Source: Chrysemys picta bellii
Lineage: Eukaryota
DNA length: 64,000 nucleotides
NCBI RefSeq assembly: GCF_011386835.1
Contig: NC_088807.1
Coordinates: forward strand, 24,738,001 to 24,802,000
Direction of reading: 5' to 3'
Every line of letters starts with the position of its first letter. Within the stretch, counting starts at the first letter, position 1. A program made the position numbers and the translations under genes. Of the stretch, positions 12,795 to 48,978 are shown one piece after another. Below the pieces are notes generated by a model. The model had not been told where the DNA came from and did not search any database. It saw only the letters and a program-made list of their open reading frames with translations.

Positions 12795-12800
12795 AATAAA
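12795..12800 (+). terminator. Probable polyA signal of the AdipoR-like gene
   Basis: AATAAA about 1.4 kb downstream of the stop, in a T-rich context. Confidence 0.55.
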
Positions 12801-13441
12801 TTTCTAGGAGCCGGAAACATTATAAGGAAAATAAGTTCTCTCCTGGCCCCTGGCCTGGCTGGAGTCCGCATGGCAGACCTTGGGCAGCGTTATGTGTGGC
12901 TGTTTCCCAGCTGCCTCGCCCCAGAGCTGGCTGCATCTCAGCGCCAGGCAAACCGTCTTTGTGCAGGCGGTGGGCGCTGCTGCAGAGAACCGGCATCTGT
13001 AGTCAGTTTCGTGTCTGTGGCTGACCTGCCTGGAGGGGAGTGGCAGGTGAAAGGAAGTGGTTGAGCATCACGGAGGCGGCTGTCTCCTGCCCAAGCTGCA
13101 GAAGGAAGCCGGGGTGAGGGGGCTGGGCAGGGGGCGCTCTCCCCTGGCAGGCAGGGCCGGGCGCTGTGGGGGCACCGTGGGGCAGGGAGCGGGGCGGGGC
13201 AGGGGGCGCTCTCCCCTGGTATTGGGAGGTGCCGTTGGGCAGAGCAGTGTGGGGCCAGCACCCTTGGTGCTATCACTACAAACACAGGAACTAGCCCCCC
13301 CGCCTCCCCCAGCGCAGGAAACCACAGGGGCGGAAGCGCCGCTCAGCTTCTGGGACTTGGTGCCGAGCCACCCGCGCCCTGGGGGGCCGAGGGGAGCAGG
13401 CGGCAGGTGCAGGGGGGAGCCCAGGGATGCGCTGAGCGACC

Positions 13442-16400
13442 ATGGATGAGGAGGGGCCGGCGGAGCAGGAGTCATGGTAAGAGGGGCACCGTGGGGAGGG
13501 GGAAATCTACCAAATCCTGCACCCTCCTCACCCCACAAAGACAGGGCCTGATGCTGCGTAGAGCAGAGGATTCTGGATTGTCCCCCCCAGGGGAAACAGA
13601 GGCACAGAAAAGGGGAACTGACTTCTCCTGTAACTCAGGAGACCCCACTCCCCTCCCCGAGATGGGGAGAGAACCCAGGAGTCCTGGCTCCCAGCCCCCC
13701 TGCTCTAACCACCAGCCCCCACTCCCCTCCCAGAGCCGGGGAGAGAACCCAGGAGTCCTGGCTCCTTTCCCATGGGCGCCAACCACAGCCCAGAATAACT
13801 CATCCACTTTTGTGTCGCCCCAGGCTCACTATATCCGGGGCAGCCAGGGGAATTACAGTTCCCCACAACGTAGCACCAAACTTCAGAGAAGTGTGTGTGG
13901 GGGGGTCATTCTTGATGTGTCCCCAGAGCACTGCTGGAGGAAACTCGCATCACGTAGGGGAGCAGAGAAGGGAGGCCCCATGGCACTGCTGGAGGGATGC
14001 TCAGAGCGCCCCATTCTTGTAATCCCCTTCCTGGTGTGTTTGCAGGTCCCCGGTGCATCGGGAGCGGTCCCAGACCTCGGGGTCCCTGTCCGAGGGCTCG
14101 GGGGTGAGTGGGGGAGGGCAAGGCTGGAGTGGAGGTTGGAACTTTGGGGTGGGGGTGGGGTGGGGTGGATGGGCACAGGGGGTCTGGGAGATCTGGGGGT
14201 GGGGTGGGGCGTCTAGGGGTGGGAGATCCAGGGTGGGGTGGCCGTGGGGACGGGGACAGGGGGTCTGGGAGATGGAGCGGGGGTAGGGTGGCTGTGGGGC
14301 AGGAGATCTAGGAGATGGGGTGAGGTGACCATGGGGACGGGGACAGGGGGTCTGGGAGATCGGGCCGGGGTAGGGTGGGCCTGGGGCAGGGGGTCTGGGA
14401 GATCTGGGGGTAGGGTGGGATGTCTAGGGGTGGGCGATCCAGGGTGAGGTGGACGTGGGGACAGGGACAGGGGGTCTGGGAGATGGGGCGGGGTAGGGTG
14501 ACCATGGGGCAGGGGGTCTGGGAGATCTGGGGGTAGGGTGGGGTGTCTAGGGGTGGGAGATCCGGGGTGGGGTGGCCGTGGGGATGGGGACAGGGGGTCT
14601 GGGAGATGGGGCCGGGGTAGGGTGGGCATGGGATAGGGGGTCTGGGAGATCTGGGGGTAGGGTCGGGTGTCTAGGGGTGGGAGATCTGGGGTGGGGTGGC
14701 CGTGGGGATGGGGACAGGGGGTCTGGGAGATGGGGCCGGGGTAGGGTGGGCATGGGGCAGGGGGTCTGGGAGATCTGGGGGTAGGGTCAGGTGTCTAGGG
14801 GTGGGAGATCCGGGGTGGGGTGGCCGTGGGGACGGGTACAGGGGGTCTGGGAGATCGGGCCAGGGTAGGGTGGGCATGGGGCAGGGGGTCTGGGAGATCT
14901 GGGGGTAGGGTGGGGTGTCTAGGGGTGGCCGTGGGGACGGGGACAGGGGGTCTGGGAGATGGGGCTGGGGTAGGGTGGGCATGGGACAGGGGATCTGGGA
15001 GATCTGGGGGTAGGGTGGGGTGTCTAGGGGTGGGAGATCCGGGGTGGGGTGGCCGTGGGGATGGGGACAGGGGGTCTGGGAGATGGGGCCGGGGTAGGGT
15101 GGGCATGGGATAGGGGGTCTGGGAGATCTGGGGGTAGGGTCGGGTGTCTAGGGGTGGGAGATCCGGGGTGGGGTGGCCGTGGGGATGGGGACAGGGGGTC
15201 TGGGAGATGGGGCCGGGGTAGGGTGGGCATAGGGCAGGGGGTCTGGGAGATCTGGGGGTAGGGTGGGGTGTCTAGGGGTGGGAGATCCGGAGTGGGGTGG
15301 CCGTGGGGATGGGGACAGGGGGTCTGGGAGATGGGGCCGGGGTAGGGTTGCCATGGGGCAGGGGGTCTGGGAGATCTGGGGGTAGGGTCAGGTGTCTAGG
15401 GGTGGCCGTGGGGACGGGGACAGGGGGTCTGGGAGATCGGGCCAGGGTAGGGTGGACATGGGGCAGGGGGTCTGGGAGATCTGGGGGTAGAGTGGGGTGT
15501 CTAGGGGTGGCCGTGGGGACGGGGACAGGGGGTCTGGGAGATGGGGCTGGGGTAGGGTGGGCATGGGACAGGGGGTCTGGGAGATCTGGGGGTAGGGTGG
15601 GGTGTCTAGGGGTGGGAGATCCGGGGTGGGGTGGCCGTGGGGATGGGGACAGGGGGTCTGGGAGATGGGGCGGGGTCCCCCCGAGTCCGACTCTGACCCC
15701 CCCCTCTCTCTGGCAGAAGAAGCGGAAGCAGCAGGGGGTACCTGGCATGGGGCAGCGGGGGCCTGAGCCCCAGACCTCCGATGACAAGGTGAGACCCTCC
15801 CCCGACTAGCCCCCATCATCTCCTCCTTATCCCCCACTAGTGCTTCTTCCCCCGCCCCCCCTCCCCGATTGCCCGCCCACCTCCCCCACACAAGTGTGGA
15901 TGGTTGAATTCTGGCCCGGCCCCTTTAAATGGTGACGGTAGGCGGGGCTTCTTCGGCGAGTGGGCGTGGTCAGCCTGCTGGCAGGGCTGCGGAGTTTCTC
16001 TGTGGTTGGCTGTGCCATGGCAGGGGGCGTGTCCGGAAGAACGGGGCGTGGTGATTGGCTGCAGGGAGAAGGGCCCTCACCCGGTTCTGTGATTGGCTGA
16101 GGAATGGAGGGGGGCATCTCCTCGACAGCTGATTGGCTGAACAGACAGAAGTGGTGTCACAGTGGGACACACCCATTCCGACCCTTCTAGGGACCCTCCC
16201 CCCTTAGGGTACCTTTGATCAGCCCCCCCCATCCCCTCCATGACCCCTTCCCCATCCCCTGCAGGGGGGAGTCCTGGGCAGGGCTGGGCTGGCAGGGGCT
16301 GCGGGTCGGGAGTGAGGGGCACCGGCAGACGGGGGGCAGGGGGGATACAGCGGGGCTGGGCTGGCAGGGGCTGCAGGTCGGGAGTGAGGGGCACCGGCAG

Positions 16401-19400
16401 ACGGGGGGCAGGGGGGATACAGCGGGGCTGGGCTGGCAGGGGCTGCGGGTCGGGAGTGAGGGGCACCGGCAGACGGGGGGCAGGGGGGATACAGCGGGGC
16501 TGGGCTGGCAGGGGCTGCGGGTCGGGAGTGAGGGGCACCGGCAGACGGGGGGCAGGGGGGATACAGCGGGGCTGGGCTGGCAGGGGCTGCGGGTCGGGAG
16601 TGAGGGGCACCGGCAGACGGGGGGCAGGGGGGATACAGCGGGGCTGGGCTGGCAGGGGCTGCGGGTCGGGAGTGAGGGGCACCGGCAGACGGGGGGCAGG
16701 GGGGATACAGCGGGGCTGGGCTGGCAGGGGCTGCGGGTCGGGAGTGAGGGGCACCGGCAGACGGGGGGCAGGGGGGATACAGCGGGGCTGGGCTGGCAGG
16801 GGCTGCGGGTCGGGAGTGAGGGGCACCGGCAGACGGGGGGCAGGGGGGATACCCCGGGGCTGGGCTGGCAGGGGCTGCGGGTCGGGAGTGAGGGGCACCG
16901 GCAGATGGGGAGTAGGGGGGATACCCCGGGGCTGGGCTGGCAGGGGCTGCGGGTCGGGAGTGAGGGGCACCGGCAGACGGGGGGCAGGGGGGATACAGCG
17001 GGGCTGGGCTGGCAGGGGCTGCGGGTCGGGAATGAGGGGCACCGGCAGAGCTGGGGGGGAACCCAGGGCTGGTCTGGCAGGGGCTGTGGGTCGGGAGTGA
17101 GGGGCACCGGCAGACGGGTGGCAGGGGGGATACACTGGGGCTGGGCTGGCAGGGGCTGTGGGTCGGGAGTGAGGGGCACCGGCAGATGGGGGGTAGGGGG
17201 GATACAGCAGGGCTGGGCTGGCAGGGGCTGGGGGTTGGGAGTGAGGGGCACCGGCAGACGGGGGGCAGGGGGGATACAGCGGGGCTGGGCTGGCAGGGGC
17301 TGTGGGTCGGGAGTGAGGGGCACCGGCAGATGGGGGGTAGGGGGGATACAGCGGGGCTGGGCTGGCAGGGGCTGCGGGTCGGGAGTGAGGGGCACCGGCA
17401 GACGGGGGGCAGGGGGGATACCCTGGGACTGGGGCTCGGCTGTTTCTCTCTTTTCCTGCCCGGAAGCCCCTGGATTGTTTGCTGGTGGCAGGAAACCGGG
17501 TCTATAAATAGTTGCCAGGGGCCCATTGTCTGGGTCCAGGCCCCCCCAGTGCTGAGCCGGTGACACCCCCTGTGACGAACTGGGACTGTTCTTACTGTGG
17601 TGTGTGAATGCTGACAGGGGAGTGTGACTAGGATGGTCTGCATCGGGGGATGGGAGCCGGCCCAAGGGAACATACCTGAGCTTGTAACATGAGAACCCAG
17701 GAGGGGGTTGGAGGTCAGGTGACTCCGGGGCCCGGGAAACTGATCAAAGGCTGTGGGAGGGGTCGCTGAAGGAGAGTGCTGGAAGCAGGCTGGAAGGAGG
17801 CTGGAGAGATGGCTGGGAGGCAGAGATGGCTCTGACCCCCCAAGGGGGGTGGGCTGGCATGCCCTGGGACCCCAAGCTGGACCTAACTGAGGGGGGCCCT
17901 GTTGTCTGTGCCTGCAAGACCTGTCTTGGACTGTATTCCTGTCATCCAAATAAACCTTCTGCTTTACTGGCTGGCTGAGAGTCATGGTGAATCGCAGGAA
18001 GCCGGGGGTGCAGGGCCCTAACTCCCCCACAATCCGCAACAACTGGTGGCAGCGGTGGGATCTACTGCACCCCGTGGACGGCGCTTCCTGCAGTAAGTGA
18101 CTGGGGAGCAGTAAAACGAAGGGGGATTGACGGGGACCAGGCCTGCTGAAGAGTGGGAGAGAGACGGTTATTACCCCTGGGAGTGTGTGACCAGCGAGAA
18201 GGACTTTTGCAGTAACAGGGTCCCCCGGGGGGATCGCAGCGAGTGGTCCCAGGGGCGGAGGAGTCTGCAGCTCGACCCTGGCAGAGAGGTGGTGACCTCG
18301 AGAAGGGCTGGCACACTAGGGGTCCCCCTGGGAACTGTGGGGAGCTGTGAGCACACAGGCCGGTGAGTGGCCAGCAGGAAGATGTATGCCAAGCGGCTTA
18401 AGAGCGACCTGGTGGAGCTGTGCAAGCAGAGGCGGCTGCGCATTGGGAGGCTCACCAAAGAACAGCTCATTGCCCAGCTAGAGGCGGAAGATCGCGCGAA
18501 TGAACCGATCCCTGTGTCTCAGGGAAGCAGCCTGGCAAATGCAGCGCAGGCACCAGTGTCTGTCCCAGCTGGGAGTGGTCAGCCGGCTGCTGAGGGCTTC
18601 CCGAGACCCCTCCTTCCTATGCCTAGGGGAAGGGTGGGGAGGAGCCCAGCAAATACCGAAGGCGCCGTGGCCCCCCCGGCCAGCAGGGGACCCTCCCGGC
18701 GAAGCTCGCCCGCCAGCAGAGGATCCTCCCGGCGACGTTCGGCATCCGGGGAGCGGAATTGGCTGGAATGGGAGAAAGAGCTAAAACTGAGAGAGCTGGA
18801 GGATCGTGAACAACAGAGACAGCATGAAGAGAGACAGCGTCAGCATGAACGGGAGGAGAAAGAGAGACAGAGACAGGAGAATGAGAGACAGCATCAGCGT
18901 GAACTGGAACTGGTGAGATTGAAGGGCAGTGAACCCCCGGCTGCGGTCAGTGATGGGGGACCCAGGACTGCACGGAGCTTTGATAAGTGCATCATGGCCC
19001 CATACAAGGAGGGGGAGGACATGGATGACTTCCTGGAGGCCTTTGAGACGGCCTGCGAGCTGCACCGGGTTGATCCCGCGGACAGACTCCGGGTCCTTAC
19101 CCCCTTACTGGACCCCAAATCCGTGGCATTGTACCGCCAACTGGGAGAGGCAGAGAAAGGGGACTACGAACTATTCAAAAAGGCCCTGCTACGTGAGTTT
19201 GGGCTGACTCCTGAGATGTACCGGGGAAGGTTCCGGAGTCAAGATAAAACCCCTGAGATCTCATATCTGCAACTAGCCGTCCGCATGGAAAGATACGCCA
19301 GCAAGTGGGCTGGTGGGGCCCAGACGAAGGAGGACCTGATTAAACTGCTGGTACTGGAGCAACTGTATGAGCGGTGCCCATCCGACCTGAGGCTGTGGTT

Positions 19401-22400
19401 GGTGGACAGAAAGCCAGAGAACCCGCGACACGCCGGGCAGCTGGCTGATGAGTTTGTAAAGAGCCGGTCAGGGGGTGGCAGGGAGGAGCCCCAAAGGAAC
19501 AGGCCCGCCGCGATGCAGAGAGAGATTCACCCTGGGACCTCCCAAAGGGGGAATATGGGGAATCCCCTCCCACGGGGAATGCCCAGCGTCAGGGACAACC
19601 AACCGGCTCGAGGGGACCCACAGGACATGAGCTGCTATTACTGCGGCCGAAAAGGCCACGTTCGGGCCCAGTGCCCCAAGCTCAAGGACAGACTGAGCAG
19701 ACCGAACCCGCACCGGGTTAACTTGGTAGAGGCCCAGACGGACGAGGGGCAGGCTTCTCACGCAAGAGGGGCTGGCAGCTTATCAACTGCTCAAGAGAGA
19801 GAAGGGCCCCAGGCCAGCTCCTCTAGGGGGCTGGATGCCCCAGACTCAGGGTTTTTGGTTTATACGGTGGGCGCGGGGCTGTCCCTCCGGAGAGAGTACC
19901 TTGTTCCCCTGGAGGTGGATGGGAGGAAGGTCAATGGATACTGGGATACGGGCGCAGAGGTGACGCTGGCCCGGCCCGAGGTGGTGGCCCCAGATCAGGT
20001 GGTACCCAACTCCTACCTGACCCTGACGGGGGTGGGCGGAACACCAGTCAAAGTGCCCGTGGCAAGGGTACACCTGAAGTGGGGGGCCAAGGAGGGCCCC
20101 AAGGATGTGGGGGTACACCCGTATTTGCCCACTGAGGTATTGATGGGGGGGGACCTGGAGAACTGGCCAAGCAACCCCCAAAAGGCACTGGTTGTGACCC
20201 GCAGTCAGAGCCGGCGAGGGGCCCTGCGCCCTGGCCTTGGGGGGGGTGCCTTGCCTGAGGCGCAGGACCCTAACCTGGTGGGGAGGGAACGCCCAGGGAC
20301 GCGGCTCAGGGAGGCTGCAGCTTCGGACCCAGCGGGCGAGAAAGAGCAGGTGGCCATCCCTGTCCCAGCTGCTGAGTTCCAGGCCGAGTTACAGAGAGAC
20401 CCCTCCTTGCGGAAGATAAGGGACCTGGCTGACCTCAATGCGGTACAGACCATGGAACGAGGTGGCCGGAAAAGGTTCCTGTGGGAGAAGGGGTTCCTGT
20501 ACCGAGAATGGGCTCCCCCAGGGAAAATGGAGTCAGGGGGGATCAGGAGGCAGCTGGTAGTACCCCAGAAGTATCGCCGCCAGCTGCTGTGCCGGGCCCA
20601 TGACATTCCCCTCTCAGGGCACCAGGGAACCTGGCGTACCCAGCAGAGGCTGCTACGGAGCTTTTACTGGCCTGGGGTCTTTGTTACTGTCCGACAGTAC
20701 TGCCGATCCTGTGACCCCTGTCAGAGGGGCAGGAAGGCCTGGGACAAGGGGAAAACAGCTTTAGGACCCTTGCCCAGCATAAAGGATCCTTTCCGGAGGG
20801 TGGCCAAGGTTAAAAGGGCGGCTCTAAACCAAGCGAGCCCAAAGCACAGACCTCCAGACTGGAGCGCTGGGAGAAGACCACAGCCCAGTTGGAACCCCAG
20901 AGGTATGGGGGTGGGAAAAGGGCACAGGCCGCATAAACCTTCCCACCTGCGAACTGCGAGTGCCATCAAGCACCCCCGACCTAAGGGGGCGCGTGGAACG
21001 GAAGGGGCCTGGTGTAACTCCCACCAAGGAACTGGAGGGATGCGGGGGCATCCATGGGAACGGGGGTAGGTTCGAACTTCCCCAGGTCACTGGCTAAAGT
21101 GACCCCGCTCAGTTCGGTCTCGAAGGGGGGAGAGATGTGACGAACTGGGACTGTTCTTACTGTGGTGTGTGAATGCTGACAGGGGAGTGTGGCTAGGATG
21201 GTCTGCATCGGGGGATGGGTGCCGGCCCAAGGGAACATACCTGAGCTTGTAACATGAGAACCCAGGAGGGGGTTGGAGGTCAGGTGACTCCGGGGCCCGG
21301 GAAACTGAACAAAGGCTGTGGGAGGGGTCGCTAAAGGCAGAGGGCTGGAAGCAGGCTGGAAGGAGGCTGGAGAGTTGGCTGGGAGGCAGAGATGGCTCTG
21401 ACCCCCCAAGGGGGCTGGGCTGGCATGCCCTGGGACCCCAAGCTGGACCTAACTGAGGGGGGCCCTGTTGTCTGTGCCTGCAAGACCTGTCTTGGACTGT
21501 ATTCCTGTCATCCAAATAAACCTTCTGCTTTACTGGCTGGCTGAGAGTCATGGTGAATCGCAGGAAGCCGGGGGTGCAGGGCCCTAACTCCCCCACAATC
21601 CGCAACACCCCCTCCCACACTTTCCTCCCCAGGAACCCTGCACCAAACGGGTGAAACCTGTCGCCAAGACCCTGTCGGGCTCGGGGCCCCCGTCGGCCAA
21701 GGTGACACCCCTGAAACGCCTGAGCCAGTCGATCCAGGTACACGGGGATCCCCCTCACCCGGCACTACGGGGGCCAGGACACATGGAGCAGGGCTGTGCG
21801 CAGCCCCCTGCAGCAGGGAGAGGGGGTGGGATGGGGGGGTCCCCTGAGGATGGGGGTGCAGGGCTGGGTGGGCTGGGGACCATGGAGTGGAGGGGGCAGG
21901 GCCTGTATTCCGCTCTCAGCCAATCACTGTCCATCCCGCCCTCGCCCCCACCCCAGAGGTCCATCAGCTTCAAGGCGGAGCCCCGCCCCCCAGGCTACGT
22001 CCCGCCCCCCCGGGCCGGGGGCTGCCGGCGCCGCAGCAGCAAACTCTGGAGCGAGACTTTCGACCGGGTCAGTGAGGAGCTCTCGGCCCATGAGGTGAAA
22101 CGACAGGAGGTGAGGGGCGGGGCCAGTCGCAGGGGGCGGGGCCAGCAGGCATGGGGTGGAGCCTGGGGAGAAGAGCGGTGGGGGAGGAGCCAGGCGGGGG
22201 CGGGGCCGGGAGCAGGTGGGGGAGGAGCCCGGCGGGGGCGGGGCCGGGAGCAGGTGGGGGAGGAGCCAGGCGGGGGCGGGGCCGGGAACAGGTGGGGGAG
22301 GAGTCAGGCGGGGGCGGTGCTGGGAACAGGTGGGGGAGGAGTCAGGCGGGGGCGGTGCTGGGAACAGGTGGGGGAGGAGTCAGGCGGGGGCGGGGCTGGG

Positions 22401-25400
22401 AACAGGTGGGGAGGAGCCCGGCGGGGGCGGGGCTGGGAACAGGTGGGGGAGGAGTCAGGCGGGGGCGGGGCTGGGAGCAGGTGGGGGAGGAGCCAGGCGG
22501 GAGGCACCATGGGGGTATCTGGGGACTTAGCTGGACCCTCCCCCCCCAGGTGATCTTCGAGCTGATGCAGGGGGAGCAGCAACTGGTGGACGATTTGAAC
22601 CTGGTGAAAAAGGTACCTCCCCCCCCCTTAGATGAGGGGCGCTGGGGGGTGGGGTCCCAGCGGGGGAAGTGGGGATCTCAGCAGGGGGGTGTTGCGCAGC
22701 GGGGGACTCGACGGGGGGCAGCAGGGGGCTGGGGGGGGAATTGGGGGGCTCAGTAGGGGGTGCTGTGTAGCAGGGGGTTGGGGGCAGCTGGGGGCTCAGC
22801 AGGGGGTAGTGGGGGGTTGCTGGAGGTAGTGGGGGGTGCTGTGCTGTGGGGGGATTTGGGGGGGCTGCGGGGGGACTTGGGGGGCTGTGGGGGTGCTGTG
22901 CTGTGGGGGGATTTGGGGGGCTGTCGGGGGCGCTGTGCTGTGGGGGGAATTGGAAGGGCTGCGGGGGGATTTGGGGGGCTGTGGGGGGCGCTGTGCTGTG
23001 GGGGGCGCTGTGCTGCGGGGGGATTTGGGGGTGCTGCGGGGGGACTTGGGGGGGCTGCGGGGGGCGCTCTCACCCCCTGCCCCTTGCAGAACTACTACGA
23101 GCCGATGCTGACGCTGGCCATCCTGCCCGAGGCCGAGCTGCGCGAGATCTTCGGGACCCTGGATTCCCTGGCCCCGCTGCACGAAGGTACAGCCTAGGGG
23201 GAGACTCCCTGCCCCATGGATGGGGGGAGGGTGGGAGCCCACTTTGCTGCTATTCCCCCCCCCCGCACTGGCGCCCCCTGCAGCAGGCTGCTCCCCCTAC
23301 AACTCCTGGATTTTGGCCAGCGGGAAGCGCAGCTCCCTGCCCGGGGGGGACAGGGGTGATCCCTGCACTGACCCACCCCCCCCCTTTTGCAGACTTGCTG
23401 GGGCGGCTGATGGGTCTGAGGCAGGAGGACGGGACGGTGCCTGAGCTGGGACCCACCCTGCTGGACTGGGTAAGGGCCGGGGTGGGAGGCTGGGGTCAAT
23501 GGGGGGAGGCTGACATCTATGGGGCTGGGGATGTTAGGAGGGGGGAGCAGGGGGTTGGGGGAGGAGCTATGGGGAGGGGGATGGGCATGGTGGGCTGAGG
23601 GGAAGGACAAGGGGGCTGGGAGGAAGGAAGTGGGGAATACTTGGGGGGCAGGGGCTTGGGGGGGATGGGCAGGAGGGAATGAGGGAGGGGTTGGGGACCA
23701 GGAATGGGGAGATCTGAGGAGGGCAGGACCCCCCAGGGGGGAGAAGAGGGTGGGGCGAGGGGTTTCCCCCTGGCTGGGCAGTGGGGCGCTGTCTAGTGTG
23801 GGGGGAGGGGGAGGTGTAACAGGACACCCCAGCTCAGCCTGGGGACCCCTGGCCTGGTGCGTGTGGGTGCCAGGAACGGGGAACCCCCAGAGCACAGGCC
23901 GTGACTGGCTCCCTGTCCCGTCCCCCCCCCCCGCAGCTGCCCAGGTTGCAGGCCTACGAACCCTACTGCTGCCACCAGGTGTGGGCCAAGGCGCGGCTGG
24001 ACAGCCGGAAGCGGGAGCCGGCCGTGGGGGAATTCCTGCGCCTCTGCCAGGAGTCGGCCTTCAGCCGCAAGCTGGAGCTGTGGAGTTTCCTGGACCTGCC
24101 CCGCAGCCGCCTGGTCAAGTACCCGCTGCTGCTGCGGGAGGTGCTGCGCCAGACGCCCCCCGAGCACCCCGACCACGGGGCCCTGCAGCGGGCGGTGAGA
24201 GGGAGGGCTAAGGCCACAAGGGGGGGGAGGGGGGGCAGAGGGTCCCCGTGCTCCCCGCAGGGAGGGGGTGGGCACCGTGGGGGGGGGGGCAGAGGGTCCC
24301 CATGTGCCTGCAGGGAGGGGGTGGGCACTGTGGGGGGGGGGCAGAGGGTCCCCAGGTGCCCTGCAGGGAGGGGGTGGGGACCGTGGGGGGGCAGAAGGTC
24401 CCCATGTGCCTGCAGGGAGGGGGTGGGCACTGTGGGGGGGCAGAGGGTCCCCATGCTCCCCGCAGGGAGGGGGTGAGCCCCATGGGGGGGCAGAGAGTCC
24501 CCATGTGTCTGTAGGGAGGGGGTGAGCCCCATGGGGGGGCAGAGGGTCCCCGTGCACCCCGCAGGGAGGGGTGGGCCCTGTGGGGGGGCAGAGGGTCCCC
24601 GTGCACCCTGTAGGGAGGGGGTGGGCACCGTAGGGGGGCAGAGGGTCCCCGTGCACCCCGCAGGGAGGGGTGGGCCCCGTGGGGAGGACAGAGGGTTCCC
24701 GAGCCCCCCCGCAGAGACAGGCGAGGACCCTGCTGACCTGTGACCCGGGGCGGGGGGGCAGGTGGCGCTGGCCCAGGACCTGGTGGGGCTGATCAACAGG
24801 AAGACGGGGGAGGCCGAGTGCCGCTACTACCAGCAACGGCTGAGCTACCCTGATGGGGGCCCCCGGCACCCCGGCATCGACCGCTCCAGCCTGCTGCTCT
24901 GCCACGGCGAACTCCGCAACAGCAAGGGGCAGGTACCGGCCTCCCTCCCCACAGCCAGGGCTGGGCGCTAGGGGGCACCGTGCCGCAGGGAGCCGGGCGG
25001 GGGGCTGGGCGTTGGAGTGGCTGGGGGGCGGAGGCTGGGCAATGGGAGGTGCTGGGGGGCAGGGGCCTGGGGGGTGCTGGGGGGCAGGGGCCTGGGGGGT
25101 GCCGGGGGGCAGGGGCCTGGCACTGGGGGGCGGAGGCTGGGCACTGGTGGGTGCCGGGGGGCAGGGGCCGGGCACTGGGGGGTGCCGGGGGGCAGTGGCC
25201 AGGCACTGGAGGGTGGAGGCCGGGCACTGGGGGATGCCGGGGGGCAGGGGCCAGGCACTGGAGGGTGGAGGCCGGGCACTGGGGGATGCCGGGGGGCAGG
25301 GGCTGGGCACTGGGGTTGCCATAGGGTGGGGCCCTGCAGGGGGTTGGTGGGCGGGGGCTGGGCATTGGGGGGTGCCAGGGGGTGGGGACACTATCTCTGA

Positions 25401-26205
25401 GTTCGGTTTACAGCGCTTGAACCCAGGAGTCCTGGCTCCAAGCCCCTCCCTGCTCGTTCTAACCACTAGGCCCCACTCCCCTGCCGGAGCTGGGGCAAGA
25501 ACTCAGGTGTCCTGACCCCCCTCCCCTCCCGGCAGAGGCTGCACGTGTTCCTGTTCCAGGAGGCGCTGGTGCTGACCCGGCCCGTCCTGCAGGGCCAGCA
25601 CGTCGTCTTCCAGGTCCAGGGGCCTCCCCTGCCCGTCGGCCAGCTGGAGGTGCAGGACCTGCCTGACGGGGGGCCCCGGCTCGGGGGGGCCCTGCGCGAG
25701 CGCGGTAGGTGCCCCCCATGTCAGCTGGGATTCCCCTGGCAACCCTCCCTTTGCTCCCCCACCCCGTGCAACCTCCACGCCCCCACTGGGATCCCTGCCC
25801 CCCCGGTTCACGTCGGCTGCTGGAGATGGTTGGGGGGGGTCAGCTGGGGGGGGGACTGGCTGGGGGGGGGAAGCGGGGGACAGTCTGGCTGGGATGGCGA
25901 GGCCCGGTGATGGGGCAGGCTGGGTGATGGGGCAGGTGGGCTGGCTGGGATGGGGGGGGCCAGGCCGGTAGCGGATTCCCCCCCCCCCGTTTGACCCCCT
26001 CCTCCCCCCAGCCAGGAGCTGCCTGCGGGTCAGCGCCGGGGCCCAGGCCCACACGCTGCAGGCGGCCGACGCCTTCGACAAGCAGCAGTGGTTGAGCCGC
26101 CTGCGTCAGGCCCTGGCCGCCCGCCCCCCCCCGGAGCTCGAGTGCAGCCTGGGGCCCCTGGCTGCCCTGCGCCTGGACTGCGACCCCCCCATGGACCACA
26201 CCTGA
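13442..26205 (+). CDS. ARHGEF3/NET1-like DH-PH RhoGEF, about 483 aa
   Basis: Exons 13442-13476, 14046-14103, 15717-15788, 21633-21737, 21957-22109, 22550-22612, 23090-23186, 23393-23469, 23937-24194, 24762-24932, 25536-25704, 26012-26205; 1452 nt, in frame. Motifs KRVKP, TPLKR, SKLWSETFD, KRQEVIFEL, FSRKLELWSFLDLPRSRLVKYPLLLRE, KTGEAECRYY, CHGELRN, LHVFLFQE, KQQWL. The first two exons are less certain. Confidence 0.92.
14150..15675. repeat. 124-bp G-rich composite satellite (intron)
   Basis: Repeated ORF starts at 14572, 14696, 14820 give a 124-bp period. Confidence 0.9.
16270..17425. repeat. 72-bp G-rich satellite, about 15 copies (intron)
   Basis: 24-aa periodic ORF unit GRGDTAGLGWQGLRVGSEGHRQTG. 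Confidence 0.93.
18044..18061 (+). other. Primer binding site for tRNA-Leu(AAG/TAG type)
   Basis: TGGTGGCAGCGGTGGGAT is the exact complement of the tRNA-Leu 3' end ATCCCACCGCTGCCA-CCA; starts 2 nt after the LTR. Confidence 0.92.
18382..21069 (+). CDS. Gag(SCAN, CCHC)-protease-integrase Zn-finger ORF, truncated before integrase core and RT
   Basis: SAP/LEM-like N-terminus, coiled coil, SCAN-like LLVLEQLYERCPSDLRLWL, CYYCGRKGHVRAQC knuckle, DTGA protease, HDIPLSGH...CRSCDPC integrase zinc finger; no YxDD or DDE motifs seen. Confidence 0.9.
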   Translation: MYAKRLKSDLVELCKQRRLRIGRLTKEQLIAQLEAEDRANEPIPVSQGSSLANAAQAPVSVPAGSGQPAAEGFPRPLLPMPRGRVGRSPANTEGAVAPPASRGPSRRSSPASRGSSRRRSASGERNWLEWEKELKLRELEDREQQRQHEERQRQHEREEKERQRQENERQHQRELELVRLKGSEPPAAVSDGGPRTARSFDKCIMAPYKEGEDMDDFLEAFETACELHRVDPADRLRVLTPLLDPKSVALYRQLGEAEKGDYELFKKALLREFGLTPEMYRGRFRSQDKTPEISYLQLAVRMERYASKWAGGAQTKEDLIKLLVLEQLYERCPSDLRLWLVDRKPENPRHAGQLADEFVKSRSGGGREEPQRNRPAAMQREIHPGTSQRGNMGNPLPRGMPSVRDNQPARGDPQDMSCYYCGRKGHVRAQCPKLKDRLSRPNPHRVNLVEAQTDEGQASHARGAGSLSTAQEREGPQASSSRGLDAPDSGFLVYTVGAGLSLRREYLVPLEVDGRKVNGYWDTGAEVTLARPEVVAPDQVVPNSYLTLTGVGGTPVKVPVARVHLKWGAKEGPKDVGVHPYLPTEVLMGGDLENWPSNPQKALVVTRSQSRRGALRPGLGGGALPEAQDPNLVGRERPGTRLREAAASDPAGEKEQVAIPVPAAEFQAELQRDPSLRKIRDLADLNAVQTMERGGRKRFLWEKGFLYREWAPPGKMESGGIRRQLVVPQKYRRQLLCRAHDIPLSGHQGTWRTQQRLLRSFYWPGVFVTVRQYCRSCDPCQRGRKAWDKGKTALGPLPSIKDPFRRVAKVKRAALNQASPKHRPPDWSAGRRPQPSWNPRGMGVGKGHRPHKPSHLRTASAIKHPRPKGARGTEGAWCNSHQGTGGMRGHPWERG

Positions 26206-26581
26206 GCCGGGGCCCCCCCGCCGCCAGCACCCGGGGTTCACCATCACGTGGAGCTGAGAGCTGAGCCGCCTGGACGCCTGGGTCCCTCCGTGACAGGCCC
26301 ACGGAGCCGAATTCATCTTTCTCCATCTCTCCCCGGACTCCTGGGTCCATCCCCCCCCCCCTGTATTTATTGCGGCCGAGGGCTATTAACCCCACGCGGG
26401 CTGCTCTCGGGCCGTCTCCCCTCCCGCGGCGGTCCTGCCCCCCCCCCAGGTTGGAAGACGAAGCTGCCCCCTGGCCACCCTGGATTGTGAGTGGGGGGCC
26501 CGGGGCTGCCCCTCTGCGGGGGGCCCTCGCGTGTCCCTGCTGCCCTGTACCCCCCCCCCGGCCTTTCTGTGACCAGCTGCC

Positions 26582-26587
26582 AATAAA
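26582..26587 (+). terminator. polyA signal of the ARHGEF3-like gene
   Basis: AATAAA about 375 nt after the stop, followed by a GT-rich tract. Confidence 0.75.
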
Positions 26588-26859: not shown

Positions 26860-27460
26860 GGATCCTGCCTCCCGGCTGTGGCGAGAGGGCGTGGCCAGGA
26901 AGGGATCCTGCCCACAATTGGGCAGCTGTTGAGAGAGGGCGTGGCCAAGAAGGGATCCTGCCACCCAATTGGCCATCTGTGGCGAGAGGGCGTGGCCAGG
27001 CACGAACCCTGCCATCTGATTGGCCAGCTGTGGCTAGAGGGCGTGGCCAGGCAAGAACCCTGCCATCCGATTGGCCAGCTTGGGCGAGAGGGCGTGGCCA
27101 GGCAAGAACCCTGCCATCCGATTGGCCAGCTTGGGCGAGAGGGCGTGGCCAGGCAAGAACCCTGCCATCCGATTGGCCACCTGTGGAGGGCGCGGCCAGG
27201 CAGAGAGCCTGCTATTTGATTGACCAGCTGTGAAGGGAGGGCGTGGCCAGGAGTGAGCCTGCCAGCTGATTGGCCAACCACTACTAAGGGGCGTGGCTTG
27301 AGGAATCGCCTTAGCTCGCAGAGGGTGGAAGGGGGAGGGTTTTACAACATGCCTCATGATCTGATTGGTCCGTGATGGCGACACGCTGGGCCCTGACTGG
27401 CGAGGGGGCGGGGCCTGATGCGAAAGCTGCTCTGTGATTGGCTGGAGGCGGGGCCGGGGC
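26860..27460 (+). promoter_or_regulatory. Promoter of the Nudix gene built on a ~51-bp tandem repeat
   Basis: Unit gagagggcgtggccaggcaagaaccctgccatccgattggccagcttgggc, each with ATTGG and GGGCGTGGC; further CCAAT and GC boxes up to the ATG. Confidence 0.7.
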
Positions 27461-27470
27461 CGGGGGTGTC

Positions 27471-30400
27471 ATGGCGGCTGCCGCCTGGTCCGAGCGGGTC
27501 CGAGAGCTGCTGAAGCGGATGAACAACTTCCAGGAGCCCGGTGCGGGGGCGGGGCCTAGCCGGGGGCGGGAATCTACCGGGGGGGGGGAGTGTCCATGGT
27601 AACCGGCTCCTAAAGGCAGCGCCTGCTGCAATCGGCCGACACAAAATGGGGCACCGGCCACCCCTTTAATTCTTAAAGGGGAGGTGAGCGGGGGGAGTCA
27701 GCCGACAGACAATACCGGCTGCTGGCCTTTAATTCTTAAAGGGGAGGTGAGCGGGGGGGGAGTCAGCCGACAGATAATACCGGCGGGGAAGGAATTAGCC
27801 GACGGGAATGGCGGGGACTCGCTCACGTGCTTCGCTCCTTAAAGGCGCAGGGCGGGAATTCACTCCCCCGACAGGGACTGCAATTAAAGGGATGAGCCAT
27901 CGCTCTTTAAAGGCGCAGGGCGGGGAGCTGGGAGGCTTGTGACCCCTTTAACTGTTAAAGGGGCAGGATTTAGTGGGGGGAGGGACCCACAGCTAATTAA
28001 AGGGACAGGTGGGGGCACTGGGCCGCAGGGGGCTCTGAGGTGCAGGAGGTCAGTGGGGCGGGGGGCACTGGGGTGCAGGGAGCGGGCAGGGGGCTCAGAG
28101 GCGCAGGGGTTTGGTGGGGCGGGGGGCTCTGAGGCGCAGGGGTTTGGTGGGGCGGGGGGCTCTGAGGTGCAGGAGGTCAGTGGGGCGGGGGGCACTGGGG
28201 TGCAGGGCGGGGGCAGGGGGCTCTGAGGTGCAGGGGTTTGTGGGGCGGGGGGCTCTGAGGTGCAGGAGGTCAGTGGGGCGGGGGGCACTGGGGTGCAGGG
28301 AGCGGGCAGGGGGCTCTGAGGCGCAGGAGGTCGGGGGGGCGGGGGGCACTGGGGTGCAGGGCGGGGGCAGGGGGCTCAGAGGCGCAGGAGGTCGGTGGGG
28401 CGGGGGGCACTGGGGTGCAGGGCGGGGGCAGGGGGCTCAGAGGCGCAGGGGTTTGGTGGGGCGGGGGGCTCTGAGGCGCAGGGAGCGGGCAGGGGGCTCA
28501 GACGTGCAGGGATTTGGTGGAGCGGGGGCACTGGGGTGCAGGGAGCGGGCAGGGGGCTCTGAGGCGCAGGAGGTCGGGGGGGCACTGGGCGGCAGGGAGC
28601 GGGCAGGGGGCTGAGAGGCGCAGGGGGCGGGGGGCACTGGGCGGCAGGGAGCGGGCAGGGGGCTGAGAGGCGCAGGGGGCGGGGGGCACTGGGCGGCAGG
28701 GAGCGGGCAGGGGGCTGAGAGGCGCAGGGGGCGGGGGGCACTGGGCGGCAGGGAGCGGGCAGGGGGCTGAGAGGCGCAGGGGGCGGGGGCACTGGGCGGC
28801 AGGGAGTGGGCAGGGGGCTGAGAGGCGCGGGGGGCACTGGGCCACAGGGAGTGGGCAGGGAGCTGAGAGGCGCGGGGGGCGGGGGGCACTGGGCTGCAGG
28901 GAGCGGGGCAGGGGGCTCTGAGGTGCAGGAGGTCGGGGGGTGGGGGGGCACTGGGCCGCGGTCAGGGGGCTCGGGGGGCGGGAGCTCTGAGCTACAGGGT
29001 GTCCGTGTGAGGGGGTCTGACCTTGGCCCTCTCCCCAGGCTCATCCCGGGACCAGTGCCTGCCGTTCCTGGTGGCTGGGCAGCGCGTGGGCTCTGTGCCC
29101 GCCCCGGTTGCCCAGAGGCTCCAGGGCTACCCGGCCGTGTTCACCGTGTGCCCCGAGCCCGGCGGGCCCGGCCGTGTCGAGCTCTGCCGGAGCTGGCATC
29201 CCACGAGCAGCGCACGGCTGCCGTGGGGCAGGTGCTCACGGAGCTGCGGGACCTGGGGGCTTTCCCCTGCCTGCGCGAATGGAGAGACGAGGTGAGAGGC
29301 CGGGCGCCCAGCACTGGGGGGAGGGGGAGTGGGGGCTAGTGGGGAGCGGGCTGGGAGCCAGGACTCCTGGGTTCTCAGCTGGGCCCCGTGTCCTTGCAGC
29401 ACTATGAGGTGATGCCCCGGTTCTGCGACCCGCCTCTGTTCAGCATGGAGCGTGCGGCCACCGGTGAGTCCTGCTGGCTGGGGGGGGTGGGGGAGGGAAG
29501 GGAGGTGCAGTGGGGAGGAGCTGAGGGCAGAGTGGGGGGGCAGGGAGGCGCTGAGTGGGTAGGGGAGGAGCTGGGGGGCAGAGTGGGGGAGTGGAATGGG
29601 GTAGGGAGGTGCAGTGGGGAGGGGCTGAGTGGGGGAGTGGAATGGGGTAGGGAGGTGCAGTGGGGAGGGCAGATAGGAGGGCGTGGGGGTGGCAGGGAGG
29701 CGCTGAGTGGGGAGGGGAGGAGCTGGGGGCGGAGTGGGGAGTGGAATGGGTAGGAGGTGCAGTGGGGAGGGGCTGAGTGGGGGAGTGGAATGGGTAGGGA
29801 GGTGCAGTGGGGAGGGCAGATAGGAGGGCGTGGGGGTGGCAGGGAGGCGCTGAGTGGGGAGGGGAGGAGCTGGGGGGCGGAGTGGGGGAGTGGAATGGGG
29901 TAGGGAGGTGCAGTGGGGAGGGGCTGAGTGGGGGAGTGGAATGGGGTAGGGAGGTGCAGTGGGGAGGGCAGATAGGAGGGCGTGGGGGTGGCAGGGAGGC
30001 GCTGAGTGGGGAGGGGAGGAGCTGGGGGGCGGAGTGGGGGAGTGGAATGGGGTAGGGAGGTGCAGTGGGGAGGGTAGATAGGAGGGTGGGGGGAGGCAGG
30101 AAGGTGGGACGGCCTGGGGGGGCCGAATGGGGAGGGGAGAAGTGACGGCCTGGGGGTGCTCGGGGGAAACCCCTCCACTGACCTTCCCCCTCCCCTCCCC
30201 AGCGCTGCTGGGGGTTCGCTGCTACGGCACCCACCTGAACGGCTACACCTGGCGCAGGGGCCGCCCCTGCATGTGGCTGGGCCGCCGCGCCCTCACCAAG
30301 CCCACCTACCCCGGCCAGCTGGACAACCTGGTGAGGGGGGCACCGCTGGGGAGGGGCACGGGGCTGGATGCAGGGGGCGGAGCACTGGGGGGAGGGGTTC

Positions 30401-32032
30401 TGTGGCAGCCGGCTGCACCCGCACCGGAGAGGCTCCGGGGGGAGGTACCACGCTGGAGGGGCCCGGGGCAAGGTACCATGCCACAGGGGCCTAGGGGGAG
30501 GTACCACGCTGGGGGGAAGGTACCACGCTGGAGGGGCCCGGGGCAAGGTACCATGCCACAGGGGCCTAGGGGGAGGTACCACGCTGGGGGGAAGGTACCA
30601 CGCTGGAGGGGACCGGGGCAAGGTACCATGCCACAGGGGCCTAGGGGGAGGTACCACGCTGGAGGGGCCCGGGGCAAGGTACCATGCCACAGGGGCCTAG
30701 GGGGAGGTACCATGTCAGAGACACCCAGGGGGAGGCACAATGCCAGAGAGGCCTGGGAGGAAGGAACCACATTAGAGAGGCCCGGGGGAGGTACCCCACG
30801 TGCAGGGCGCTGCCCTCACTCCCTGCTGTCCCCCAGGCGGCGGGGGGCATCGCGGTGGGGCTGGGGGTGACGGAGACGCTGGTGAAGGAGTGCCAGGAGG
30901 AGGCCTGCATCCCCCCCGCGCTGGCAGCCCAGGCCCGGCCCGTGGGCACCATCAGGTAACTCGGGGTGGGGGGGTCACCCTCTCTAACCCCCCCCTCTAA
31001 CCCCCCTTTCCTCTCTGCTCTGACCCACCCCAGCCCCTAGATCTGCCAGGTCAGCATCACCATGTGGCCAAGAGGAGAACTGCATCTGCAGGGGGCTGAG
31101 CCCAGCACCATGGGGGTGGAAACCAGGCAGGGTCCAATGGGGAGCCGCTCTCCCCCTCCAGCACCCACCCTGCTGACCCCCTCTCCCCTCCCCCTAGCTA
31201 CACCTATGAAGACCATCGGGGCATCTTCCCCGAGTGCCAGTTTGTCTTCGACCTGGAGCTGCCCGAGGAGTTCGAGCCCCACGTGGGCGATGGGGAGATG
31301 CAGGAGTTTTACCTGTTGGGCCTCGATGAGGTGAGCGGTGGGCAGGGGGCGCTCTCCCTTGCCAGTCAGGGCCAGGTGCTGTGGGGCACCGTGCTGTGGG
31401 GCAAAGTGCTCAGTAGGGGGCACTTCCCCCTGGCAGGCTGGGCACTGGGGGGCACCGTGCTGCAGGGAGGGGGTCAGGGGCACCCGGCCAGGCAGTTAGC
31501 GCTGCCGCTCCTGCCCTGCCCTGCCCCACCCCGAGGGAGGTTGCGTTGGTTATCGCCCATGGCGACAGCCCATGACCATACACTTCTTAGGGAGCGCCAG
31601 GCACCGTTATGTGTGGCTGTTTCCCAGCTGCTCCGCTCCAGAGGTGGCTGCTTCTCCATGGAAGGCCAGACAGCCGCCCGCCCACAGCTGGTCTCTCTCC
31701 CGCAGGTGAAGGACGCCATCGCGTCAGGTGACTTCAAACCCAACTGTGCGCTGGTCGCCCTGGATTTCCTCATCCGGCACGGCCACCTCCAGCCTGATCA
31801 TGGTGAGGGGACAGCCCCGAGCTCGGCTAGCAGGGGCTGCGGGTCAGAAGTAGGGGCACCAGCTGAGCTGGGGGAGGCACAGGGGCTACAGGTCGGGAGT
31901 GAGGGGCACGGGCAGGGCGGAGCCAGGGGCTGGGGGGTGGGAGTGGGGCTTCGCACCAGCCTCTCACCCCCTGTTCTCCCCACAGAGCCCCACTACGCCG
32001 AGCTGGTCGAGGGGCTGCACCGGAGCAGGTGA
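27471..32032 (+). CDS. Nudix hydrolase of the YJR142W/Tnr3-N/plant NUDT20 type (DUF4743-like + Nudix), about 303 aa if one frameshift is corrected
   Basis: Exons 27471-27540, 29039-29291, 29400-29463, 30203-30330, 30837-30955, 31198-31330, 31706-31802, 31986-32032; 911 nt, one short of a multiple of 3. Motifs WRDE, MERAA, GxHLNGY, WxxRRxxxKPTYPGQLDN, AGG...KECQEEA, FDLELP, GDGE, FKPNC. AATAAA at 32150. Confidence 0.85.
28000..28960. repeat. G-rich intronic satellite (Nudix intron 1)
   Basis: Reiterated ggcagggggctctgaggcgcagg/gggggcactggg units. Confidence 0.85.
29480..30110. repeat. Purine-rich intronic satellite
   Basis: Reiterated gggagtggaatggggtagggaggtgcagtgggg units. Confidence 0.85.
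30440..30710. repeat. 75-bp satellite containing several GGTACC palindromes
   Basis: 25-aa periodic ORF unit AWYLPPSVVPPPRPLWHGTLPRAPP. Confidence 0.85.
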
Positions 32033-32204
32033 GACGTCGCCGCTCGTCTCCACTTCTGCTGCCCCTACCCAGCGACCCCCGCTCCTGTGATAAGGGTGCC
32101 AGGACACAGGGCCCCACCCCTCTGCACCCCGCCCCCCGGCACCTGCCTGAATAAATCCTCAAACCCTCAGCTGCTGTGTGCGTCTGGCTCTGGGGGGGCG
32201 CAGC

Positions 32205-32670
32205 TCACACACCGCAGGGCCCGTCCCCTCCAGCAGGGGGCGCAGGGCCCATCTCCTCCAGCAGGGGGCGCTGGACACACACAGGGCGCAGGGCCCGTCC
32301 CCTCCAGCAGGGGGCGCAGGGACCCACACAGAGCGCAGGGCCCGTCTCCTCCAGCAGGGGGCGCAGGGACCCACACAGAGCGCAGGGCCCGTCTCCTCCA
32401 GCAGGGGGCGCAGGGATACATAGGGTGCAGGGACCCACACAGCGCAGGGCCCATCTCCTCCAGCAGGGGGTGCTGGACACACACAGCGCAGGGCCTGTCC
32501 CCTCCAGCAGGGGGCGCAGGGACACACACACAGAGCGCAGGGCCCGTCTCCTCCAGCAGGGGGCGCAAGGACACACACACACAGCGCAGGGCCTGTCCCC
32601 TCCAGCAGGGGGCGCAGGGACCCACACAGCGCAGGGCCCATCCCCTCCAGCAGGGGGCGCAGGGACACAC
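32205..32670. repeat. ~47-bp minisatellite between the convergent 3' ends of the Nudix gene and RBM10
   Basis: Unit ccagcagggggcgcagggacccacacagagcgcagggcccgtctcct. Confidence 0.9.

Positions 32671-32742: not shown

Positions 32743-48978
<16,236 letters not shown>

Follow-up and report, generated by a model that had tools for sequence, protein, structure and literature searches.

Proteins that combine a DUF4743 domain with a Nudix domain are known from fungi and plants, and comprise yeast YJR142W, the N-terminal domain of Schizosaccharomyces pombe Tnr3, plant NUDT20/24, and a maize homologue. As PMC5158307 relates from Goyer et al. 2013 (Biochem J 454:533), YJ9J_YEAST and NUD20_ARATH act on the diphosphates of oxy- and oxo-thiamin (oxy-/oxo-ThDP) both in vitro and in vivo, findings that are also relayed in PMC5627462. 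The N-terminal Nudix domain of Tnr3, a protein of 569 residues in which it is fused to a thiamin diphosphokinase, likewise acts on oxy-/oxo-ThDP (PMC8789043). In yeast genetics, deletion, overexpression, and cross-complementation with the plant gene tie the family to oxythiamin resistance (PMC5158307). Pre-emption of thiamin damage by this family is therefore established in yeast and plants, while its extension to animals would proceed by homology.

Here, we describe a member of the family encoded in a 64,000-nucleotide stretch of the genome of the turtle Chrysemys picta bellii (the window). With a probability of roughly 80%, it is an intact, transcribed, single-copy turtle orthologue that likely functions as a damaged-thiamin diphosphatase, the frameshift present in the window being an assembly artefact.

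Gene model and the missing base of exon 2

The coding sequence lies on the plus strand and runs in eight exons from the ATG at position 27471 to the TGA at 32030-32032 (Table 1), which are exactly the limits (27471-32032) and the exon number of the first-pass annotation. All its introns are of the GT..AG type, and tblastn with the Gopherus flavomarginatus protein (LOC127036860, P0001) as query matches 8 of 8 exons. The open frame across exons 6-8 (window 31100-32029) was used as a query beside the single exons. The polyadenylation signal that the same annotation had called is also present.

Table 1. Features of the DUF4743-Nudix gene and its surroundings, in window positions
Feature	Positions	Strand	Evidence and remarks
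RhoGEF / SOS1_NGEF_PH (ephexin-like) gene, upstream neighbour	15717..26199	+	tblastn with RhoGEF ORF; Gopherus and platypus gene tables
51-bp tandem repeat, 8 copies, putative promoter region	26875..27276		TRF; motif and CpG scan
Exon 1, coding part	27471..27540	+	ATG 27471; 23 codons + 1 nt; donor GT 27541; encodes MAAAAWSERVRELLKRMNNFQEP
Exon 2, bulk of DUF4743	29039..29291	+	Pfam and DNA alignment; assembly 1 base short after 29186 (TGCC^CGG)
Exon 3, DUF4743 end (HYEVMPRFCDPPLFSMERAAT)	29400..29463	+	Pfam E 2.2e-5
Exon 4, GTHLNGY and KPTYPGQLDN, Nudix fold begins	30203..30330	+	tblastn, conservation
Exon 5, variant Nudix box G175-x5-L-x7-K189-E190-C-Q-E193-E194-A-C-I	30837..30955	+	
Exon 6, with invariant E224, F227, D230, L231	31198..31330	+	tblastn, conservation
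Exon 7, FKPNC motif	31706..31802	+	tblastn, conservation
Exon 8, coding part, ends TGA 32030-32032	31986..32032	+	tblastn
Polyadenylation signal AATAAA	32150..32155	+	118 nt past stop codon
Open frame with C-terminal G-patch exon of RBM10, downstream, tail-to-tail	32766..33341	-	Pfam G-patch E 2.1e-16

DNA alignment with Gopherus and with a softshell-turtle cDNA reports exon 2 as one base short after position 29186, and the raw CDS of the window (911 nt) is frameshifted, with early stops. If this deletion were real, the turtle copy would be a recent pseudogene, truncated after about 73 correct residues. However, the deletion is backed by 0 of 4 runs (three DNA runs and a spliced RNA contig). 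The DNA runs X1, possibly the source sample, and X4 both carry a C inserted behind 29186, as does X15, the spliced RNA contig, in which position 29291 is spliced to 29400 across a GT..AG intron. The independent X2, another sample under the same organism label, exhibits an in-frame CCA variant at the affected codon. Because all four read sets restore the frame, the frameshift is an assembly slip of one base in a GC-rich exon. The orthologues of Caretta and Lepidochelys are flagged 'LOW QUALITY PROTEIN' by NCBI; this GC-rich gene is thus often hit by assembly indels, a further argument against a pseudogene. The 8 exons and 14 splice sites hold no further defect, and the corrected CDS comprises 912 nt and encodes 303 residues, with exon lengths (70/254/64/128/119/133/97/47) equal to those of Gopherus. 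The dN/dS ratio against Gopherus is 0.21 (dS 0.19), and the gene is thus under purifying selection. A pseudogene is very improbable in the light of these data; the turtle gene is real, transcribed, and intact. Since Logan contigs may omit rare variants, the assembled animal could nonetheless carry a heterozygous frameshift allele. The first-pass annotation had passed over the frameshift without mention.

Domain composition and predicted fold

All the motifs listed in the first-pass annotation are present in the product: WRDE (residues 105-108), GTHLNGY (138-144), KPTYPGQLDN (162-171), AAGG...KECQEEA (173-195), and FKPNC (266-270). Pfam analysis of the exon pieces reports colinear hits with DUF4743 (PF15916), piece 2a covering profile positions 15-52 (E 1.4e-8), piece 2b positions 61-90 (E 5.6e-5), and exon 3 positions 91-111 (E 2.2e-5). 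Single window exons do not return any Pfam match with NUDIX (PF00293), as expected for pieces of ~40 residues. The full-length domain search was performed on the proteins of Malaclemys terrapin (LOC128829426, P0214) and Gopherus (P0001) as stand-ins, which are 97.4% and 92.7% identical, respectively, to the window product over 303 residues. Pfam reports DUF4743 with an E-value of 1.9e-36 for the former (profile 2-117 of 118) and of about 1e-36 for the latter. NUDIX scores 24.9-27.8 bits for these two proteins and 24.9-40.1 bits in six vertebrate orthologues, the cut-off (Pfam gathering score) being 21.1. The PF15916 and NUDIX profile matches, together with database names that go back to best hits at NCBI and UniProt, support the assignment of the turtle protein to the YJR142W / Tnr3-N / NUDT20-24 family, to which the maize homologue also belongs by PF15916 and database names. 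Two differences are apparent within this family: Tnr3 has an added C-terminal thiamin diphosphokinase domain of which the vertebrate protein is devoid, and the plant members have 'chloroplastic' in their names, while in the turtle protein the conserved DUF4743 helix begins right at the N-terminus.

The Nudix box departs from the canonical one, as the glutamate of GX5E is replaced by Leu, the Arg by Lys, and a Gly by Cys; the Leu and Lys replacements are a point against the proposed function, although 3DUP (see below) has them too. The catalytic core KExxEE (K189-E190-C-Q-E193-E194, exon 5) is unchanged in 44 vertebrate sequences, across which 40 residues are invariant, including G175, K189, E190, E193, E194, and E224. 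W6 is also invariant in the 44 vertebrate orthologues. The AlphaFold model (pLDDT 94.6) returns as top PDB match in Foldseek the entry 3DUP (TM 0.88/0.93, rmsd 1.8 A, 40% identity), a MutT/nudix protein from Rhodospirillum rubrum deposited by structural genomics, the other matches having TM values of at most 0.43 and covering the Nudix half only. A phmmer comparison with 3DUP yields an E-value of 8e-60 over residues 30-300. 3DUP possesses the same two domains over its full length and the same variant Nudix box, with KEC-x-EE and with the glutamate of GX5E replaced by Leu; it is bacterial and has no introns, unlike the turtle gene. The model thus predicts an N-terminal DUF4743 domain packed against a C-terminal Nudix fold, as in 3DUP.

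The name 'thiamin pyrophosphokinase 2', under which the same gene is found in fish, shark, and coelacanth, implies a second thiamin pyrophosphokinase. While the database name alone speaks for such an activity, six orthologues, among them the fish protein P0013, have no Pfam domain besides DUF4743 and NUDIX, the TPK catalytic and B1-binding domains being absent. Moreover, the ~300 residues of these proteins match only the N-terminal Nudix half of Tnr3, and their fold is that of the Nudix protein 3DUP. Proteins that lack a kinase domain are misnamed in this way; the name probably derives from the likeness to the bifunctional S. pombe Tnr3, and we give a kinase function practically no credence.

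Predicted activity and substrate

The turtle protein is most likely a metal-dependent diphosphatase that would use the K189-E190-x2-E193-E194 helix of its variant Nudix box. The chemistry expected is that of the yeast and plant enzymes, XDP -> XMP + Pi. Judged by its homology to the characterized enzymes of budding and fission yeast, Arabidopsis, and maize, it most likely acts in vivo on damaged thiamins in their diphosphate form: oxy-/oxo-ThDP, and ThDP more slowly, would be converted to the monophosphates, a conversion that would keep damaged cofactors away from ThDP-dependent enzymes.

Alternatively, the protein may be a functional Nudix hydrolase with a non-thiamin physiological substrate in vertebrates, for instance a nucleoside diphosphate like GDP or some other metabolite with a diphosphate group. 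The characterized yeast, fission-yeast, Arabidopsis, and maize enzymes have low kcat/Km values on oxy-/oxo-ThDP, about 1e3 M-1 s-1, and higher ones on GDP (PMC5158307), and Nudix specificity is notoriously hard to infer from homology (PMC5389931). The sampled bacterial homologues, devoid of a thiamin gene context, are also compatible with another substrate. In contrast, the oxythiamin-resistance genetics of yeast (PMC5158307) and the fusion of Nudix and thiamin diphosphokinase domains in Tnr3 (PMC8789043) point to thiamin. Bacterial and vertebrate homologues share 40-47% identity, and this strong residue conservation suggests a conserved substrate. Overall, a non-thiamin substrate appears unlikely, albeit worth keeping in mind, and damaged thiamin diphosphates are the preferred candidates.

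Regarding the bacterial context, the 80 best proteobacterial homologue loci were collected, their neighbouring ORFs clustered, and the ten most recurrent families submitted to Pfam. These include tRNA-synt_1c, 5'-nucleotidase, NnrU, HNH, peptidase M23, and Abhydrolase_2, among others, with no thiamin-related gene among the ten, and Rfam analysis returns a TPP riboswitch in 0 of the 16 proteobacterial loci scanned. Taken by itself, this gene context is neutral on the thiamin link, neither for nor against it.

Distribution among vertebrates and genomic neighbourhood

The gene is already known, being machine-annotated in dozens of vertebrate genomes under names such as 'nudix hydrolase 20/24, chloroplastic-like', 'YJR142W-like', and 'thiamin pyrophosphokinase 2'. 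The outcome at this locus is hence mainly one of clean-up: an intact gene, a one-base assembly error, and a misleading database name. A literature search for a study of any vertebrate member found none. The abstract of Goyer et al. 2013 reportedly mentions free-standing homologues in animals. Nothing substantial differs between the annotated orthologues and the window, except that the window assembly is one base short in exon 2. The Malaclemys and Gopherus loci carry the same gene, in Gopherus also with the same neighbours, and the gene tree agrees with the species tree, placing the window sequence within turtles (support 99) and beside Malaclemys.

Orthologues are annotated in lamprey, sharks, ray-finned fish, coelacanth, lungfish, amphibians, squamates, and turtles. 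The earlier view of a pathway kept in reptiles was consequently too narrow, also in view of the monotremes and marsupials below, and among reptiles in the broad sense birds and crocodilians gave no orthologue. A mammalian orthologue, which the first-pass annotation had set beforehand as counting against its proposal, exists: protein searches report it in platypus and echidna, where the same gene is named 'nudix hydrolase 24, chloroplastic-like' (in platypus also with the same neighbours), and in at least nine marsupials. The marsupial proteins exhibit an insert of 6-8 residues after the HLN motif and a second one after residue 220, and form a long branch. The same annotation knew of no human orthologue, in line with the protein searches, which returned no placental (hence no human), bird, or crocodilian orthologue, and with a survey of 22 human NUDIX proteins in which thiamin is unmentioned. 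For birds, the negative is tempered by the high GC content of this region, which many bird assemblies lack. An archosaur source was considered for the Logan protein P0002 and rejected, as its 90% cluster includes Pelodiscus sinensis. Among vertebrates, the gene thus appears to be missing only from placentals, birds, and crocodilians.

We tentatively propose, at less than even odds, that purifying selection has kept an enzyme pre-empting thiamin antimetabolites in vertebrates as far apart as lamprey, turtles, monotremes, and marsupials, and that this enzyme was lost independently in placentals and archosaurs, a loss pattern read only from absence in protein searches. If true, humans, rodents, and birds would lack a protection from oxy-/oxo-thiamin diphosphate found in most other vertebrates, which would be relevant to oxythiamine pharmacology and to the thiamin deficiency linked to thiaminase in fish and reptiles. 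Should the phyletic pattern hold, zebrafish, Xenopus, and opossum would be natural test systems, the standard mammalian models being without the enzyme.

According to the gene tables, the order with the RhoGEF gene upstream and RBM10 downstream is common to the window, Gopherus, and platypus. The RhoGEF gene comprises at least 10 coding exons and has an AATAAA at 26582. RBM10 adjoins on the other side, as the first-pass annotation had proposed: its G-patch exon lies on the minus strand at ~32957-33050, and the gene extends past 42500, colinear with Gopherus RBM10. UBA1, which was expected next to RBM10 from the mammalian arrangement, was not located in the ORF list of window positions 1-7000. 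Lastly, the 51-bp tandem repeat sits about 200-600 bp 5' of the ATG, and its copies contain ATTGG, the CCAAT box in inverted form, together with a GC-box-like motif (GGGCGTGGCC). With two extra ATTGG boxes at 27364 and 27437, this array is a putative promoter of the DUF4743-Nudix gene.

Gene structure and the reading frame of exon 2

Reading 27000-32500 and translating the candidate exons yields a DUF4743-Nudix gene of eight exons on the + strand (see table), whose CDS ends are exactly those of the first-pass annotation and whose translated exons contain all the motifs quoted there. All seven introns have GT..AG ends, G-rich minisatellites fill introns 1, 3 and 4, and the open frame of exon 1 contains no ATG before that at 27471. 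The gene itself was thus correctly observed, but a frameshift in exon 2, an assembly error, had been passed over. The raw window CDS measures 911 nt and its frame changes between residues 72 and 74; as compared with the Gopherus genomic sequence and softshell-turtle cDNA, one base is missing after 29186 (TGCC^CGG). Contigs of four public read runs were aligned to 28990-29468. A C is inserted behind 29186 in X1 and X4 (both DNA) and in X15, whose contig skips 29292-29399 with GT..AG ends and therefore represents spliced RNA. X2, a second sample with the same organism label as X1, reads CCA at that codon, which is in frame and synonymous. Because the runs restore the frame and none of the four carries the deletion, we attribute it to a slip of the assembly within a GC-rich run; a heterozygous allele keeps a slight probability, since rare variants can be lost from Logan contigs. 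Once the base seen in the reads is restored, the CDS comprises 912 nt and encodes 303 residues, and the exon lengths (70/254/64/128/119/133/97/47) equal those of Gopherus. In NCBI, the orthologues of Caretta and Lepidochelys carry the label 'LOW QUALITY PROTEIN', which fits with frequent indel errors in this gene.

Features of the Nudix locus and its flanks (window positions)
Feature	Position	Strand	Remark
RhoGEF / SOS1_NGEF_PH gene	15717-26199	+	upstream; at least 10 exons
51-bp x 8 tandem repeat	26875-27276		upstream of ATG; copies with ATTGG (inverted CCAAT box) and GC-box-like GGGCGTGGCC
Two more ATTGG boxes	27364 and 27437
Nudix coding exons	27471-27540, 29039-29291, 29400-29463, 30203-30330, 30837-30955, 31198-31330, 31706-31802, 31986-32032	+
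Nudix TGA stop	32030-32032	+
AATAAA	32150-32155	+	3' of Nudix stop
RBM10 C-terminal G-patch exon	~32957-33050	-	downstream

Exons 6, 7 and 8 and the two intervening introns form a single open frame of 310 codons (31100-32029, +), probably by chance in DNA of 69% G+C; intron retention across these exons would hit no stop codon. Within intron 2, a 48-bp stretch (29342-29389, core GGACTCCTGGGTTCT) reaches a summed contig depth of 2e5-9e5 in every run; it is a piece of a highly abundant SINE-like turtle repeat.

Protein family, structure and predicted activity

Protein searches were started with the open frame spanning exons 6-8 and continued with the best full-length matches. The window product shares 97.4% identity with the Malaclemys terrapin protein LOC128829426, 95.4% with Platysternon, 92.7% with Gopherus and 84-87% with softshell turtles. 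Pfam reports colinear DUF4743 matches in exons 2a, 2b and 3, and, in full-length orthologues, the entire DUF4743 profile (E ~1e-36) followed by NUDIX (24.9-40.1 bits, cut-off 21.1) and no other domain. The only NCBIfam similarities, to IPP isomerase and YfcD, fall below threshold. The sole solved relative by sequence is the Rhodospirillum rubrum MutT/nudix protein 3DUP (E 8e-60, residues 30-300). An AlphaFold model built with 50 orthologues (pLDDT 94.6, pTM 0.90) superimposes on 3DUP with TM scores of 0.88/0.93 and an rmsd of 1.8 A; its other PDB matches cover the Nudix half only. The turtle protein and 3DUP both carry Leu where the canonical GX5E motif has glutamate, and both possess the KEC-x-EE core. 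These domains and the 3DUP match bear out the DUF4743-Nudix assignment proposed earlier. The label 'thiamin pyrophosphokinase 2' used in databases is wrong, as Pfam finds no kinase domain. NCBI and UniProt apply it to fish, shark and coelacanth orthologues (P0013, P0004, P0040 and many others) comprising DUF4743 and NUDIX only, and the Platysternon protein P0219 is labelled 'histidine ammonia-lyase'; both labels look like annotation errors.

Across 44 aligned vertebrate sequences, 40 residues never vary. Among them are G175, K189, E190, E193 and E194 of the variant Nudix box (G-x5-L-x7-K-E-C-x-E-E-x-C-I), E224, the WRDE residues W105, R106 and E108, as well as E125, R126, N142, R158, K162, D170, F266, K267 and N269. 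Between the window and Gopherus, dN is 0.039 and dS 0.189; the resulting dN/dS of 0.21, together with the solely synonymous exon 2 differences of the X2 haplotype, shows that the gene evolves under purifying selection.

Yeast YJR142W and Arabidopsis NUDT20 are described as hydrolysing oxy- and oxo-thiamin diphosphate (PMC5158307, citing Goyer et al. 2013). According to the same source, yeast oxythiamin resistance is lowered by deletion and raised by overexpression, the plant gene raises the resistance of the yeast deletant, and kcat/Km on these substrates is only ~1e3 M-1 s-1, GDP being better in vitro (PMC5158307). The Tnr3 N-terminal Nudix domain, fused to thiamin diphosphokinase, reportedly hydrolyses both compounds too (PMC8789043, citing Goyer et al. 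2013). From its family membership and conserved catalytic core, we infer that the turtle enzyme would do likewise. The gene context of the bacterial homologues offered no independent support for a thiamin role.

Distribution and gene tree

Among the 120 best matches of the turtle query are annotated orthologues from turtles, squamates, salamanders, frogs, coelacanth, lungfish, sturgeon, teleosts, sharks, rays, chimaera, platypus and echidna. The platypus query adds Petaurus, Dromiciops, Notamacropus, Gracilinanus, Sminthopsis, Monodelphis, Macrotis, Vombatus and Trichosurus among its own 120, and an exon 6-8 open-frame search identifies a lamprey orthologue. Mammalian orthologues therefore exist, in platypus, echidna and at least nine marsupials, and the range extends from lamprey to turtles, monotremes and marsupials; the family assignment aside, the earlier picture of a gene kept in reptiles and absent from mammals does not hold. 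Many vertebrate genomes already have the gene annotated, and the locus is in no way unusual. Neither list of 120 best matches contains a placental, bird or crocodilian protein, down to ~50% identity; since turtles are the archosaur sister group, any archosaur protein should have outranked those of squamates. On these negative searches, the gene is likely absent from placentals and archosaurs, which apparently lost it. GC-rich regions are often missing from bird assemblies. The high-identity match P0002, considered as an archosaur candidate, clusters with Pelodiscus.

The branching of the 44-sequence tree is that of the species: the turtles group together (support 99), the window sequence lying beside Malaclemys, and monotremes and marsupials make up another clade (support 100) on a long branch. 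The marsupial branch measures 0.4 substitutions per site, yet all catalytic residues are kept. In the same alignment, two inserts specific to this lineage are common to the marsupial proteins P0173-P0181 and P0197: one of 6-8 residues behind HLN(A/G)(F/Y) and one of 5 residues behind residue 220. Full-length homologues also occur at no fewer than 552 bacterial loci, mostly of Alphaproteobacteria (Rhodospirillales, Thalassospira, Magnetospirillum) and Gammaproteobacteria; the best 80 of these at least 552 share 36-47% identity with the turtle protein, which is unusually high for a vertebrate-bacterium pair.

Neighbouring genes, transcripts and putative promoter

The 3' ends of the Nudix gene and RBM10 face each other across ~500 bp of a 47-49-bp minisatellite, and colinear RBM10 sequence extends beyond 42500. 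UBA1 was not located among the ORFs of 1-7000. Gene order is the same in Gopherus and in platypus, where the upstream gene model also has an HlyIII (AdipoR-like) domain; in Dromiciops, the Nudix gene stands alone within 20 kb. In the turtle, AdipoR-like (HlyIII) and ephexin-like RhoGEF genes (7032-26199) lie in a row with the Nudix gene beside the RBM10 3' end. The platypus locus (L004:1-9404) holds HlyIII, RhoGEF and Nudix domains in turtle order upstream of RBM10, the first two merged in one model.

Two independent softshell-turtle Logan cDNA contigs (L002:1574-1810 and L003) run straight from the RhoGEF 3' UTR into Nudix exon 2, omitting exon 1, hence some read-through, conjoined transcripts exist; the matching window sites are ~26321-26372 and 29037. 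In these transcripts, the Nudix ORF has no ATG in frame upstream of exon 2. L002 also extends over the 3' end of RBM10, on the opposite strand, so an assembly join may account for part of this contig. The coding exon 1 is conserved, with W6 invariant across the 44 vertebrates, which argues for the Nudix gene having its own start. From its motifs, the region upstream of the ATG looks like a putative CCAAT/GC-box promoter. The tandem repeat there is a minisatellite made of promoter elements, the alignable stretch in Gopherus (L001 8438-8597) being shorter.
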